Shown piece after piece: positions 26,679-57,995 of a stretch of DNA of 64,000 bases. Positions within the stretch are counted from its first letter, which is position 1. Each line of letters opens with the position of its first letter. Below the pieces are notes generated by a model, which was not told the origin of the DNA, ran no database searches, and saw only the letters and a list, made by a program, of their open reading frames with translations. A program made the position numbers and the translations under genes. The stretch spans positions 162,304-226,303 of the IMG/VR virus record IMGVR_UViG_3300042319_002138; one strand, given 5' to 3'.

Positions 26679-26718
26679 CAAAAAAGAAAAAGTTCTTTGA
26701 TGTATTGGTATTAGTAAT

Positions 26719-43236: not shown

Positions 43237-43306
43237 TATAAAAGGTAATAATTGTTAATTACAAAATTTGACTTTTTAAGAAATACAACTATATTTATAA
43301 TATAAA

Positions 43307-43375
43307 ATGAAAAATACGAACATCATATCATTATTAGAAAGATTAGAGAGATTTAGTCTAATGGAGATGGTATGA
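43307..43375 (+). CDS. Leader peptide 3 (22 aa, MKNTNIISLLERLERFSLMEMV)
   Basis: Core codons TTA TTA GAA AGA TTA GAG AGA match downstream Leu(UAA), Glu(UUC) and Arg(UCU). Confidence 0.78.
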   Translation: MKNTNIISLLERLERFSLMEMV

Positions 43376-43396
43376 TTATTTTTTAAATAATATTTT

Positions 43397-43432
43397 AAAA
43401 CCCGTCTCTTAAAACAGATGGGTTTTTTTTTT
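43397..43432 (+). terminator. Attenuator terminator of tRNA cluster 3
   Basis: AAAACCCGTCT-cttaaaac-AGATGGGTTTT plus T-tract. Confidence 0.8.
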
Positions 43433-43486
43433 GAAAAAGATTTGGTAGATTAAAAAAGATTACTTACATTTGTAAGACAAACAACG

Positions 43487-43915
43487 GGGGTAGGAAGTTA
43501 GAGATGAGTGTCCTACTCCCGTGACAAAAAGAAAAAGTTCTTTGACATATTAAAACGGGGACAAGGTAACCACAAACCCACTGGTAATAGGCAGTTCTTG
43601 AGATGGAATGCAAGACAGAACGTAACCCCTACCTTGTTCTTTTTTAAAATATATTGTGGTGGTAAGAAAAGGTGAACTCGTTAAGTTCATAGGCCTGTTG
43701 ACAAAAGATGGTGAAACGAGTGTGGTTGTCGACTACTGCATCACATATATAATACATTGTGTTGTTCCCTTGAGAAAGGAATCAAGAATAAGAGTGGACA
43801 GACTTTAAGCACTACAACACAGAGGACTCAACCTCAAAGAACCTGTACCCTTGAAAAACTCGTTTAAGTAAAGCAGGTTTGCTCCGAAATAAAAGGGTAT
43901 GAGAATAAGGAGTAT
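43487..43915 (+). ncRNA. Tandem array of candidate structured small RNAs
   Basis: Consecutive closed stems: GGGGGTAGGA/TCCTACTCCC, ACAAGGTA/TACCTTGT, TGTGGTG/CATCACA, TGTGTTGT/ACAACACA, and a pseudoknot-like AACCTG/CAGGTT with TACCCTT/AAGGGTA. Confidence 0.55.
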
Positions 43916-43917
43916 TT

Positions 43918-44000
43918 GCTCGGGTGGTGAAATAGGTATACACGTTTGACTTAAAATCAAATTCCCATTGGGAGTGAGGGTTCAAGTCCCTCTCCGAGTA
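43918..44000 (+). tRNA. tRNA-Leu(UAA)
   Basis: TTTGA-CTTAAAA-TCAAA, long variable arm. Confidence 0.92.
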
Positions 44001-44061
44001 CTGTGAAATGAACAACGTCACCACAAGAGTTGTACCTTTATGGTTTTATAATGTGGTATTT

Positions 44062-44133
44062 GGTCCTATCGACTATCGGTTAGGTCGTCAGGTTTTCATC
44101 CTGGAAAGCGGGGTTCGATTCCCCGTAGGACTA
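44062..44133 (+). tRNA. tRNA-Glu(UUC)
   Basis: Loop TTTTCAT. Confidence 0.92.
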
Positions 44134-44216
44134 CAAAAGAGGTGGATACTTTGTACGTAGATAATTTAGTAATATCTTGTCGTAGTGCACCGTTGACGAA
44201 ACCTCTTTTATTTTTG

Positions 44217-44289
44217 GGTCCCGTAGTGTAATGGATTAACATAAGGAGCTTCTACCTCTTTGATTCAGGTTCGAATCCTGACGGGACTA
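44217..44289 (+). tRNA. tRNA-Arg(UCU)
   Basis: Loop CTTCTAC. Confidence 0.9.
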
Positions 44290-44356
44290 CTAAAAAAATA
44301 TTAACTACTAGGTTCGATTTTTAATAAACCTTAAATATTTATTAATAAAATATATT

Positions 44357-44962
44357 ATGAATTTTGAGGAAAAATATAATAAAGAAGAACTTGAGAAGTT
44401 AATTTTTGTTGAGAGTAAGAGTTATCGTGAAATTGGTAAAATTTATGGTGTTAGTGACGCATACATAAAAAAAGTGTGTGGCAGATTAGGGATTAAACTT
44501 AGAAAAAGAAAAAATTTTCCTGAAAATTTTATACCACACAATAAAGGTATGGGTAAAAAAGTTATATGTAAAAATTGTGGTAAAGAAACAAAAAGTTCAC
44601 ACGATAAACAAATATATTGTTCATTTGATTGTAATGTGGAACATAAAAATAAAAATAAATACAAAGATTACTTAGACAATCAAGAAAAATATTGTAATAC
44701 CACATCAGGTTTGCGATGGTTAAAAAAATATTTTTTAATAGACCAAGATAATAAGTGTAATATTTGTGGAATAGATAATTTTTGGAACGGTAAACCATTA
44801 GTTTTTGTTATGGACCATATAAACGGTGATGCTAGTAATAACAAAAGAGATAATCTAAGATTAATATGTCATAATTGTGATTCACAGTTAGACACATACA
44901 AATCTAAAAATAAGAATTCAGCAAGGAAAGAAAGATATTTGTTAAACTACAAAAATATTTAA
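44357..44962 (+). CDS. HNH homing endonuclease inside tRNA cluster 3
   Basis: 'KCNICG...VMDHINGDASNNKRDNLRLICHNCD'; N-terminal CxxC module. Confidence 0.9.
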   Translation: MNFEEKYNKEELEKLIFVESKSYREIGKIYGVSDAYIKKVCGRLGIKLRKRKNFPENFIPHNKGMGKKVICKNCGKETKSSHDKQIYCSFDCNVEHKNKNKYKDYLDNQEKYCNTTSGLRWLKKYFLIDQDNKCNICGIDNFWNGKPLVFVMDHINGDASNNKRDNLRLICHNCDSQLDTYKSKNKNSARKERYLLNYKNI

Positions 44963-45177
44963 AATAAACGAGAAAGAGATACTCGTAGGGTTTTTAAGTA
45001 TCCCTCAAAACTTAACGGAGCTGGTACCACCACGTCAAGGGGTACTCGTTGGGAATCGGAAGGAAGACTCTCCTATCCCCCAAGTAAGAGTTGACTTTTA
45101 AGTGGTAAGACACGTTGGGTTTTGAAATAGAAAAACTGTGAATATCTACTCACCATTAATCTCAGGTGGGGAAACAT

Positions 45178-45283
45178 AGTCAGGTGGCGGAATTGGTTAG
45201 ACGCTAAATTAACGAGTGGATAGTGTGCCATTGGGGAAGGGCCAAGAAAGTTACACATACAGGTTCAAGTCCTGTCCTGACTA
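45178..45283 (+). ncRNA. tRNA-like RNA (Leu-type D arm, T arm, acceptor AGTCAGG/CCTGACT) lacking a canonical anticodon arm
   Basis: TGGCGGAATTGGTTAGACGC ... ACAGGTTCAAGTCCTGT; the middle does not form a 5-bp stem with 7-nt loop. Confidence 0.7.
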
Positions 45284-45554: not shown

Positions 45555-45635
45555 AGTCAGGTGGCGAAATGGTGACGCCTAAATGAGACCCGTGGGGCGA
45601 AAAGACTCTCGTAGGTTCAAATCCTGTCCTGACTA
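45555..45635 (+). ncRNA. Second tRNA-like RNA with identical acceptor AGTCAGG/CCTGACT and no anticodon arm
   Basis: TGGCGAAATGGTGACGC ... GTAGGTTCAAATCCTGT. Confidence 0.7.
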
Positions 45636-50002: not shown

Positions 50003-50292
50003 ATATAAGTGGCGGAATTGGTAGACGCTTACGTTTGAAAAGAGAGTAAGGTTAGATTGGGAGTTCTGTAAAAGCCTAAAAGACCTTAGATTTAGCTAAT
50101 CTTGGTGGTCTATAATCAGACTGGTCAAGAGGTTTGGTTACGGTACTCTTTAAAAACCAACTGTAACAAGTTATATAGATAGATTTAATAATATGATAGA
50201 ATTAAATCCTTAGACTCTTGTAAAATGTATGGACTGAAAGAAACCTAGTTTTGAATAAGTTCGTGGAGGTTCGAATCCTCCCTTATATACCA
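50003..50292 (+). ncRNA. 290-nt RNA with tRNA ends (acceptor, D arm, T arm, CCA) and an insert of about 235 nt
   Basis: ATATAAG-TGGCGGAATTGGTAGACGC ... GGAGGTTCGAATCCTCC-CTTATAT-ACCA. Confidence 0.75.
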
Positions 50293-57944: not shown

Positions 57945-57995
57945 TTTGATTATTTAATATTTATTCTTATATTTGTAAGAGTTCTTTGAATTATT

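Follow-up and report, generated by a model that had tools for sequence, protein, structure and literature searches.

Phage tRNA islands have been known for 50 years to hide non-tRNA RNAs whose functions are still open. The closest precedents for the locus described here are RNA C and RNA D of phage T4 (species 1 and 2 stable RNAs of the T4 tRNA cluster), small non-tRNA RNAs of still unknown function encoded among the phage tRNA genes on the same strand and made together with the tRNAs (PMC9697503). RNA C and RNA D are cut out of the tRNA precursor. GOLLD and ROOL are large ornate RNAs of phages or prophages, also of unknown function, often found near tRNA islands and possibly co-transcribed with them (PMC12286853, PMC5737381); they are single RNAs of 580-800 nt or more with a fixed architecture. 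Theta (minimal HDV-like) ribozymes abut tRNA genes in Caudoviricetes phages of Bacteroidota, whose tRNAs lack an encoded CCA; they start within about 5 nt of a tRNA 3' end, have a P1/P2/P3/P1.1 nested double pseudoknot with a catalytic C and are reported almost only from gut phages (PMC10879173). The freshwater-1 motif (Rfam RF02979) is a short structured RNA of unknown function from freshwater metagenomes.

The stretch of DNA analysed here (the window, 64,000 nt) is the last 64 kb of a 226-kb IMG/VR virus record of a jumbo phage, estimated to be about 70 % complete. Near-identical DNA occurs in lake-water metagenomes from more than 20 studies. The window has a GC content of 0.31 and holds 24 tRNA genes and a tmRNA gene, all on the + strand. 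The sequence-only reading had claimed that about 430 non-coding, GC-enriched bases in one of the tRNA clusters fold into four or five separate units of 40-100 nt, each closed by a terminal stem, with further units between the tRNAs, and this observation was confirmed. Its interpretation, that the units may be processed small RNAs or self-cleaving ribozymes, was supported only in part: they are conserved, strand-specific structured RNAs for which processed small RNAs remain the best reading, whereas the ribozyme idea was not supported.

Organization of the RNA/tRNA unit

The region begins behind an intrinsic terminator of the upstream genes, an 11-bp stem followed by a T-run (feature 43397-43432, + strand; terminator at 43397-43426), which marks the start of a separate transcription unit. 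It is followed by promoter P0 (43441-43472, + strand) of the Bacteroidota type, TTTG-N20-TAcaTTTG, with -33 and -7 boxes matching the consensus in PMC7366714. The pattern TTTG-N18-20-TAnnTTTG occurs 13 times in the window against 2.9 expected, 12 of them on the + strand, which points to a Bacteroidota host. The same element recurs upstream of RNA units in relatives and upstream of the tmRNA gene at 57945-57975.

The segment 43484-43917 has a GC content of 0.35-0.43 in 100-nt windows, against 0.15-0.34 in the flanks. It holds only short unconserved ORFs, the longest of which (43508-43675) is broken by one-base indels among close relatives. On the + strand it comprises a 5'-terminal hairpin, U1 (43484-43522), and four compact modules, U2 (43557-43645), U3 (43655-43745), U4 (43758-43835) and U5 (43841-43913), each closed by a terminal stem. 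They are followed on the same strand by class II tRNA-Leu (UAA, 43918-44000), spacer S1 (44001-44061), tRNA-Glu (UUC, 44062-44134), spacer S2 (44135-44216) and tRNA-Arg (UCU, 44217-44290), the last RNA gene of the unit. An HNH-like ORF lies downstream at 44357-44962.

Folding energy alone was weak evidence. Against shuffled sequences the z-scores were -5.5 for U1, -2.9 for S2, -2.2 for U5, -1.9 for U4, -0.9 for U3, -0.6 for U2 and +0.1 for S1, and the whole block scored -1.5 on the + strand and 0.0 on the - strand. The decisive support came from comparison with other phages. In total, 225 related loci were found through the neighbouring SPFH-domain protein, and IMG/VR was then scanned with short patterns taken from each unit. 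Every unit except S2 has homologues: the U4 core in more than 120 viral contigs (a lower bound), U2 in 27, U3 in 21, S1 in 19 and U5 in 15. Complete genomes that carry them range from 97 to 304 kb. Within the record itself, a U4 covariance model run with filters off and HMMs of the other units found one copy each; U2 is not a scoring relative of U4 despite a similar UUGAGA loop.

Predicted structures and conservation of the modules

U1 is a strong hairpin (-22 kcal/mol) and probably a 5' stabiliser of the primary transcript. It is conserved in 9 related loci, and in the related locus L221 a G-U wobble moves within the stem, which only works on the + strand as RNA. Between U1 and U2 lies the M motif (43535-43551, + strand; AAGTTCTTTGACATATT), a promoter-like or leader signal specific to RNA genes. 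All five intergenic + strand copies of GTTC[TA]TTGA (43537-43545 here) in the 226-kb record lie 7-19 nt upstream of RNA genes, namely tRNA-Asn, tRNA-Ser, U2, a tRNA-like gene at 50003 and tmRNA, and the motif also lies upstream of U2, U3, U4 and tRNAs in relatives. An extended -10 promoter was considered, but it does not fit the tmRNA 5' end; the motif may be a variant -7 box, as a second promoter element specific to RNA genes, or an RNA-level processing signal.

U2 is a multi-stem RNA of about 85 nt. Its closing stem (43557-43568 with 43630-43641) has 8 of 10 pairs changed on both sides, an internal hairpin with the conserved loop AUGGAA(A/U)G has 4 of 4 covarying pairs, and the junction strands are invariant. 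In the alignment of 18 sequences 94 % of cells were paired against 35-48 % when partners were slid, 12 pairs showed changes on both sides, and 0 of 500 shuffles were as good. A U6 tract (43640-43645) follows, so that the end of U2 looks like a terminator, and most of the 18 homologues have a U-run right after the closing stem. However, the 12-bp stem encloses about 60 nt and was not called by a terminator scan allowing loops of 3-8 nt.

U3 is an RNA of about 91 nt with a 7-bp closing stem P1 (43655-43661 with 43739-43745), which covaries, and an 8-bp helix P3 (43697-43704 with 43726-43733), which is 100 % paired with four doubly changed pairs in 15 distinct sequences. The invariant ACUCGU can pair either with ACGAGU inside the P3 loop (a pseudoknot) or locally in a small hairpin; since those bases never vary, the data do not discriminate between the two.

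U4 is a three-way junction with a 3' hairpin. It comprises a stem also labelled S1 (43758-43765 with 43814-43821; distinct from spacer S1), H1 (43766-43781) with loop CUUGAGAAA, a variable hairpin and hairpin H2 (43822-43835), whose loop (CUCAA here, UUCUCA elsewhere) pairs with the H1 loop (UUGAG here). In a 52-sequence alignment 94 % of cells were paired against 40-48 % when slid, and the kissing helix was 86 % paired. Stem S1 and H2 show compensatory changes, for example U-A to A-U at the outer S1 pair and G-C to A-U in H2, while H1 is invariant partly because it was used for the search. The 19-nt core is exact in the more than 120 viral contigs and in 8 phage-like MAG contigs. The 14 exact hits in cellular genomes are either phage-like low-GC MAG contigs or chance matches lacking the flanking helix, as in Streptomyces and Cohnella.

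U5 consists of two hairpins (CCUG/CAGG at 43842-43845 with 43874-43877 and GCUCC/GGAGU at 43881-43885 with 43909-43913) whose loops pair over 7 bp (UACCCUU, 43846-43852, with AAGGGUA, 43893-43899). In 11 sequences this loop-loop pairing is 100 % kept with one compensatory change, and the 3' hairpin changes C-G to U-A in some members. The unit next to tRNA-Leu is pseudoknot-capable, as the sequence-only reading had proposed, but it ends 4 nt before the tRNA and not 2-3 nt.

Spacer S1 is nearly invariant. It has a hairpin, ACAAC/GUUGU, whose loop ACCACA can pair with UGUGGU downstream, followed by a U-rich run; in relatives ACCGCA also pairs with UGUGGU. S2 has a 9-bp closing stem (AAAAGAGGU/ACCUCUUUU) followed by AUUUUUG. 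The AAAGAGG/CCTCTTT stem noticed earlier is present, but S2 has no homologue in the related loci compared and no convincing one in 30 related phage records, and it is a lineage-specific hairpin.

The order and content of the modules differ between phages. U4 precedes U5 here and in the related locus L215, but U5 precedes U4 in L095. U1-M-U3 occurs without U2 in L219, in L073 a promoter leads directly into U3 with U4 lying 4 kb away, in L228 U3 is followed by S1, and in L246 and L252 U2 sits behind the stop codon of an ORF, outside tRNA arrays. This argues for independent cassettes and against a single large RNA.

U4, U5 and S1 usually sit 3-8 nt upstream of a tRNA. In 33 of 62 distinct U4 copies of type A, ARAGORN found a tRNA or tRNA-like gene starting 3-7 nt after H2; seven of the 12 canonical ones are tRNA-Leu, and many of the others carry the Leu-type D-arm (GGCGGAAUUGGUAGACGC) with extra sequence in the anticodon region. 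When a tRNA precedes U4, a linker of about 4 nt (often CAAA) separates them. U5 sits 3-8 nt before tRNA-like genes, and S1 is directly upstream of tRNA-Glu or tRNA-Asp in 10 of 10 distinct sequences, mostly directly after another tRNA. A second U4 architecture, type B (48 copies), embeds the same core in a 100-300-nt RNA that ends in GGGUGCUAA and is mostly not next to tRNAs. Type B was considered as a tmRNA leader or a cis-regulator, but ARAGORN found a tmRNA downstream in only 3 of 48 copies, although it missed at least one tmRNA that Rfam finds, and no conserved downstream protein or constant neighbour gene turned up.

RNA libraries and known RNA families

Metatranscriptome contigs from four runs were compared with the region. 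In run X19 a 172-nt contig, about 97 % identical (3 other letters, 2 gaps), covers exactly 43478-43647, that is from the predicted transcription start, 6 nt after the -7 box, to just behind the U6 tract of U2. Contigs in X20 and X22 also lie on U1-U2, and one X20 contig runs on into the U3 of a relative. U3 of this phage has no coverage in the four runs, and U4 and U5 are covered only over short conserved pieces that may come from relatives. No coverage was found at 43300-43447 or 44300-44400 in any run, which argues against plain DNA carry-over. Since these are assembled contigs at low depth (2.5-6), they demonstrate presence in RNA libraries and not ends, strand, processing or abundance.

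A covariance scan of 43250-44400 against Rfam 15, with permissive filters and E <= 10, returned only the three tRNAs and none of the self-cleaving families (HDV, hammerhead, twister, twister-sister, pistol, hatchet, hairpin, glmS and others), and ARAGORN found no further tRNA. Across the window and 30 homologous loci, scanned at gathering thresholds and at E <= 10, only tRNA, tmRNA, one GOLLD (262 bits, in L149, a phage that also carries U4) and one freshwater-1 (86 bits, inside the tRNA cluster of L133, a related U4-carrying contig) matched; weak hits to RAGATH-9 (18.8 bits) and DUF2693 (13.7 bits) did not recur at homologous positions. U2 had no match in the window or in 6 homologous loci, nor did U4, U5 and U2 homologues in 18 other loci. 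Freshwater-1 differs from the modules in sequence and fold and is not present in the window. The GOLLD and ROOL models did not match here; the present units are of 40-95 nt, independent and re-orderable.

A relaxed theta/HDV-like descriptor was built from the domain-delimited sequences in the supplementary data of the theta ribozyme paper, with the order P1-J1/2-P2-P3-L3(with P1.1)-P3'-P1'-P1.1'-L4-J4/2(starting with C)-P2'. It recovered 3 of 3 published examples. In 43400-44400 it gave a single hit with mismatches inside tRNA-Glu, equal to the shuffle background of 0.53, and none starting near the tRNA 3' ends at 44000, 44134 or 44290. Moreover, U1-U5 lie upstream of the tRNA, and the 3-8 variable bases separating U4, U5 and S1 from the downstream tRNA mean that RNase P would still be needed. 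A distant BLAST of 43300-44400 against 50,697 GenBank phage records matched only the tRNAs, so there is no sequence similarity to T4 RNA C/D, whose host phylum also differs. Like those RNAs, the modules are encoded within a tRNA cluster, on the same strand and without coding capacity, but there are at least five of them here, with kissing-loop or pseudoknot folds, each widespread among lake phages. A search for the core motif sequences in 8.4 million papers gave no hits.

Possible roles of the modules

The favoured explanation, held with moderate confidence, is that 43478-44290 is a polycistronic non-coding RNA/tRNA transcription unit of a lake-water jumbo phage probably infecting Bacteroidota. 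In this view the host-type promoter P0 starts an RNA that opens with the protective hairpin U1, and the following cassettes, each belonging to its own conserved phage RNA family that different phages combine in different orders, would be freed as discrete stable small RNAs by RNase P cutting at the tRNA 5' end and by 3'-end processing of the preceding tRNA, as for T4 RNA C and RNA D. U4, U5 and S1 would act as 5' leader modules, U4 and U5 mostly of Leu-type tRNAs and S1 of Glu or Asp tRNAs, and U1-U2 would in addition be made as a separate RNA of about 170 nt ending at the U-tract behind the closing stem of U2. The analysis itself establishes that the region is non-coding, conserved, structured at the RNA level on a defined strand, associated with tRNA genes and present in RNA libraries. 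Co-transcription with the tRNAs, the processing route and release as stable species are inferred, as is action through a conserved protein or RNA partner, suggested by the near-invariant loops and helices, above all of U4 and the U2 junction. The very high conservation of U4, even within its helices, is not explained by a passive leader or spacer role, and the stem plus U-run ending U2, S1 and S2 could mean regulated termination rather than processing. The occurrence of U2 outside tRNA arrays, the U4-like core in the larger type B RNA that is mostly not next to tRNAs, the missing conservation of S2 and the lack of coverage of U3 in the RNA libraries also speak against this explanation.

Of the alternatives, conditional attenuation is unlikely but the least so: U2, S1 and S2 each end in a long closing stem followed by a U-run (UGUGGU plus U5-6 for S1 in relatives, ACCUCUUUU AUUUUU for S2) just upstream of the next RNA gene, and could be ligand-, protein- or tRNA-responsive terminators setting how much polymerase reads on into U3-U5 and the tRNAs. 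The end of one contig at 43647, the read-through of another from a relative into U3, and the resemblance of the invariant U2 junction with covarying stems to a riboswitch aptamer would fit this. On the other hand, the stems enclose 50-70 nt and were not called as terminators, no alternative anti-terminator pairing was found, U4 and U5 have no U-run, no ligand or gene association points to a signal, and U2 homologues behind ORFs look like plain 3' ends. Self-cleaving ribozymes of an undescribed class, with U4, U5 or S1 cutting near their own ends to free neighbouring tRNAs, are also unlikely, although they cannot be excluded by computation. The compact pseudoknotted folds with near-invariant unpaired nucleotides packed against tRNAs, the existence of theta ribozymes, and a sub-threshold HDV-like hit (33 bits against a 44-bit cut-off) elsewhere in the tRNA region of a relative (L224) speak in favour, but the negative Rfam and descriptor results, the variable linker and contigs from relatives that run uninterrupted across the 5' border of U4 speak against.

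A single multi-domain ornate RNA of about 430 nt, of the GOLLD or ROOL kind, appears improbable. The region is contiguous, on one strand and next to tRNAs in a phage, GOLLD itself occurs in a U4-carrying phage, and the loop-loop complementarities could equally act between molecules; however, modules occur singly, in other orders and with other neighbours, some have their own promoter-like motif, U2 has a terminator-like end and one contig stops after it. The least likely reading is that of decayed tRNA genes or chance structure in GC-richer spacer DNA. It draws on the 7-bp acceptor-like closing stem of U3, the many aberrant long tRNA-like genes of this phage group and the non-significant z-scores of U2, U3 and S1, but no unit gave a tRNA model hit at E <= 10, covariation supports non-cloverleaf folds in U2, U3 and U5, and conservation extends over dozens to more than 100 phage contigs. 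It is largely refuted for U2-U5 and S1 and remains possible only for S2.

A more speculative and doubtful possibility is that U4 represents a new functional RNA class tied to leucine tRNAs. One of its hairpin loops reads like a tRNA-Leu(GAG) anticodon loop (UUGAGAA) and kisses a second loop carrying the Leu codon CUC or CUU followed by A, while U4 is attached mostly to Leu-type tRNA genes and is almost invariant across more than 120 phages. It may sense or compete with a host tRNA-Leu, like a normally masked T-box specifier, or it may catalyse a step in maturing the odd Leu-like tRNAs with inserted sequences. U2, in the same vein, may be a riboswitch-like aptamer.

That phage tRNA islands contain non-tRNA RNAs is not new, but this locus shows that freshwater jumbo phages carry a whole toolkit of short, modular, strongly conserved RNAs built into their tRNA arrays, at least five families of which have no Rfam entry. 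Their small size, clear covariation-backed folds and appearance in environmental RNA libraries make them unusually tractable for structure probing, pull-downs and cleavage assays. The tight link of U4 and U5 to Leu-type tRNAs, and of S1 to Glu/Asp tRNAs, gives a concrete handle on the question of how phages control, protect or exploit the maturation of their own tRNAs.

Atypical tRNA-like genes and their surroundings

Two tRNA-like genes, at window positions 45178-45283 and 45555-45635, were found to have the acceptor GUCAGG.../...CCUGACU and a Leu-type D-arm, but 20-55 extra bases between the D-arm and the T-arm. The Rfam tRNA model scored them at only 34-35 bits and ARAGORN missed them. The same kind of gene, often with a 9-nt 'anticodon' loop or a predicted short insert, follows the RNA modules U4 and U5 in many related phages. 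Directly upstream of the tRNA-like gene at 45178 lies a second GC-enriched (0.39-0.49) non-coding block of about 210 nt (44963-45177), which is probably another set of RNA modules. The preceding 201-aa ORF (44357-44962), located right after tRNA-Arg, demonstrated a weak HNH endonuclease signature (HNH_3, 20.3 bits, below the Pfam cut-off of 24.8 bits), which is typical of homing endonuclease genes lodged in phage tRNA clusters.

A further tRNA-like gene (50003-50292) comprises acceptor halves (ATATAAG ... CTTATAT), a Leu-type D-arm, a T-arm and an encoded ACCA end, but about 235 bases are inserted in between. No Rfam intron family matched it at gathering level. The M motif, GTTC[TA]TTGA, lies 9 nt upstream of this gene.

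Structured RNAs in related phage contigs

The U4 core is also embedded in a larger conserved RNA of 100-300 nt, referred to as U4 type B, in related loci such as L110 (positions 1888-2160), L241 and L238. This RNA has a 5' hairpin (loop GUAAU), further long-range helices and a GGGUGCUAA end. It occurs in 48 distinct phage contigs, has no Rfam match and no constant neighbouring gene, and is sometimes located upstream of tmRNA.

Phage contigs that also carry U4 or the module U3 were found to hold RNAs of known families, namely a freshwater-1 RNA (86 bits) inside a tRNA cluster (contig L133, 1382-1443, - strand) and a GOLLD RNA (262 bits) directly before a tRNA (contig L149, 1293-1710, + strand). 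One also has an HDV-F-prausnitzii-like hit 27 nt upstream of a tRNA (contig L224, 1838-1905, - strand), but this hit was sub-threshold (33.4 bits against a 44-bit cut-off). The tRNA regions of a 150-kb relative (L073, 5040-5520 and 8370-9000) contain many further GC-rich, apparently structured non-tRNA segments, one example being a recurrent element ending GGAGCGAGACGGGUACUCCAUCAC just before U4.

Recurrent short motifs

The modules U2, U4 and U5 each display a similar CUUGAGA/CUUGAAA string in a hairpin loop (43603-43612, 43769-43777 and 43849-43858, respectively), whereas U3 and U5 share AACUCGU(U)UAAG. Since the conserved part of U2 proved to be AUGGAA(A/U)G, at least that resemblance may be due to chance.

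In the whole 226-kb record the M motif precedes only RNA genes (5 of 5 intergenic copies, at window positions 26692, 36773, 43537, 49986 and 57981, all on the + strand). At the tmRNA gene it directly follows a standard -7 box. The motif may be a promoter variant specific to RNA genes, but it could also be a leader/processing signal.
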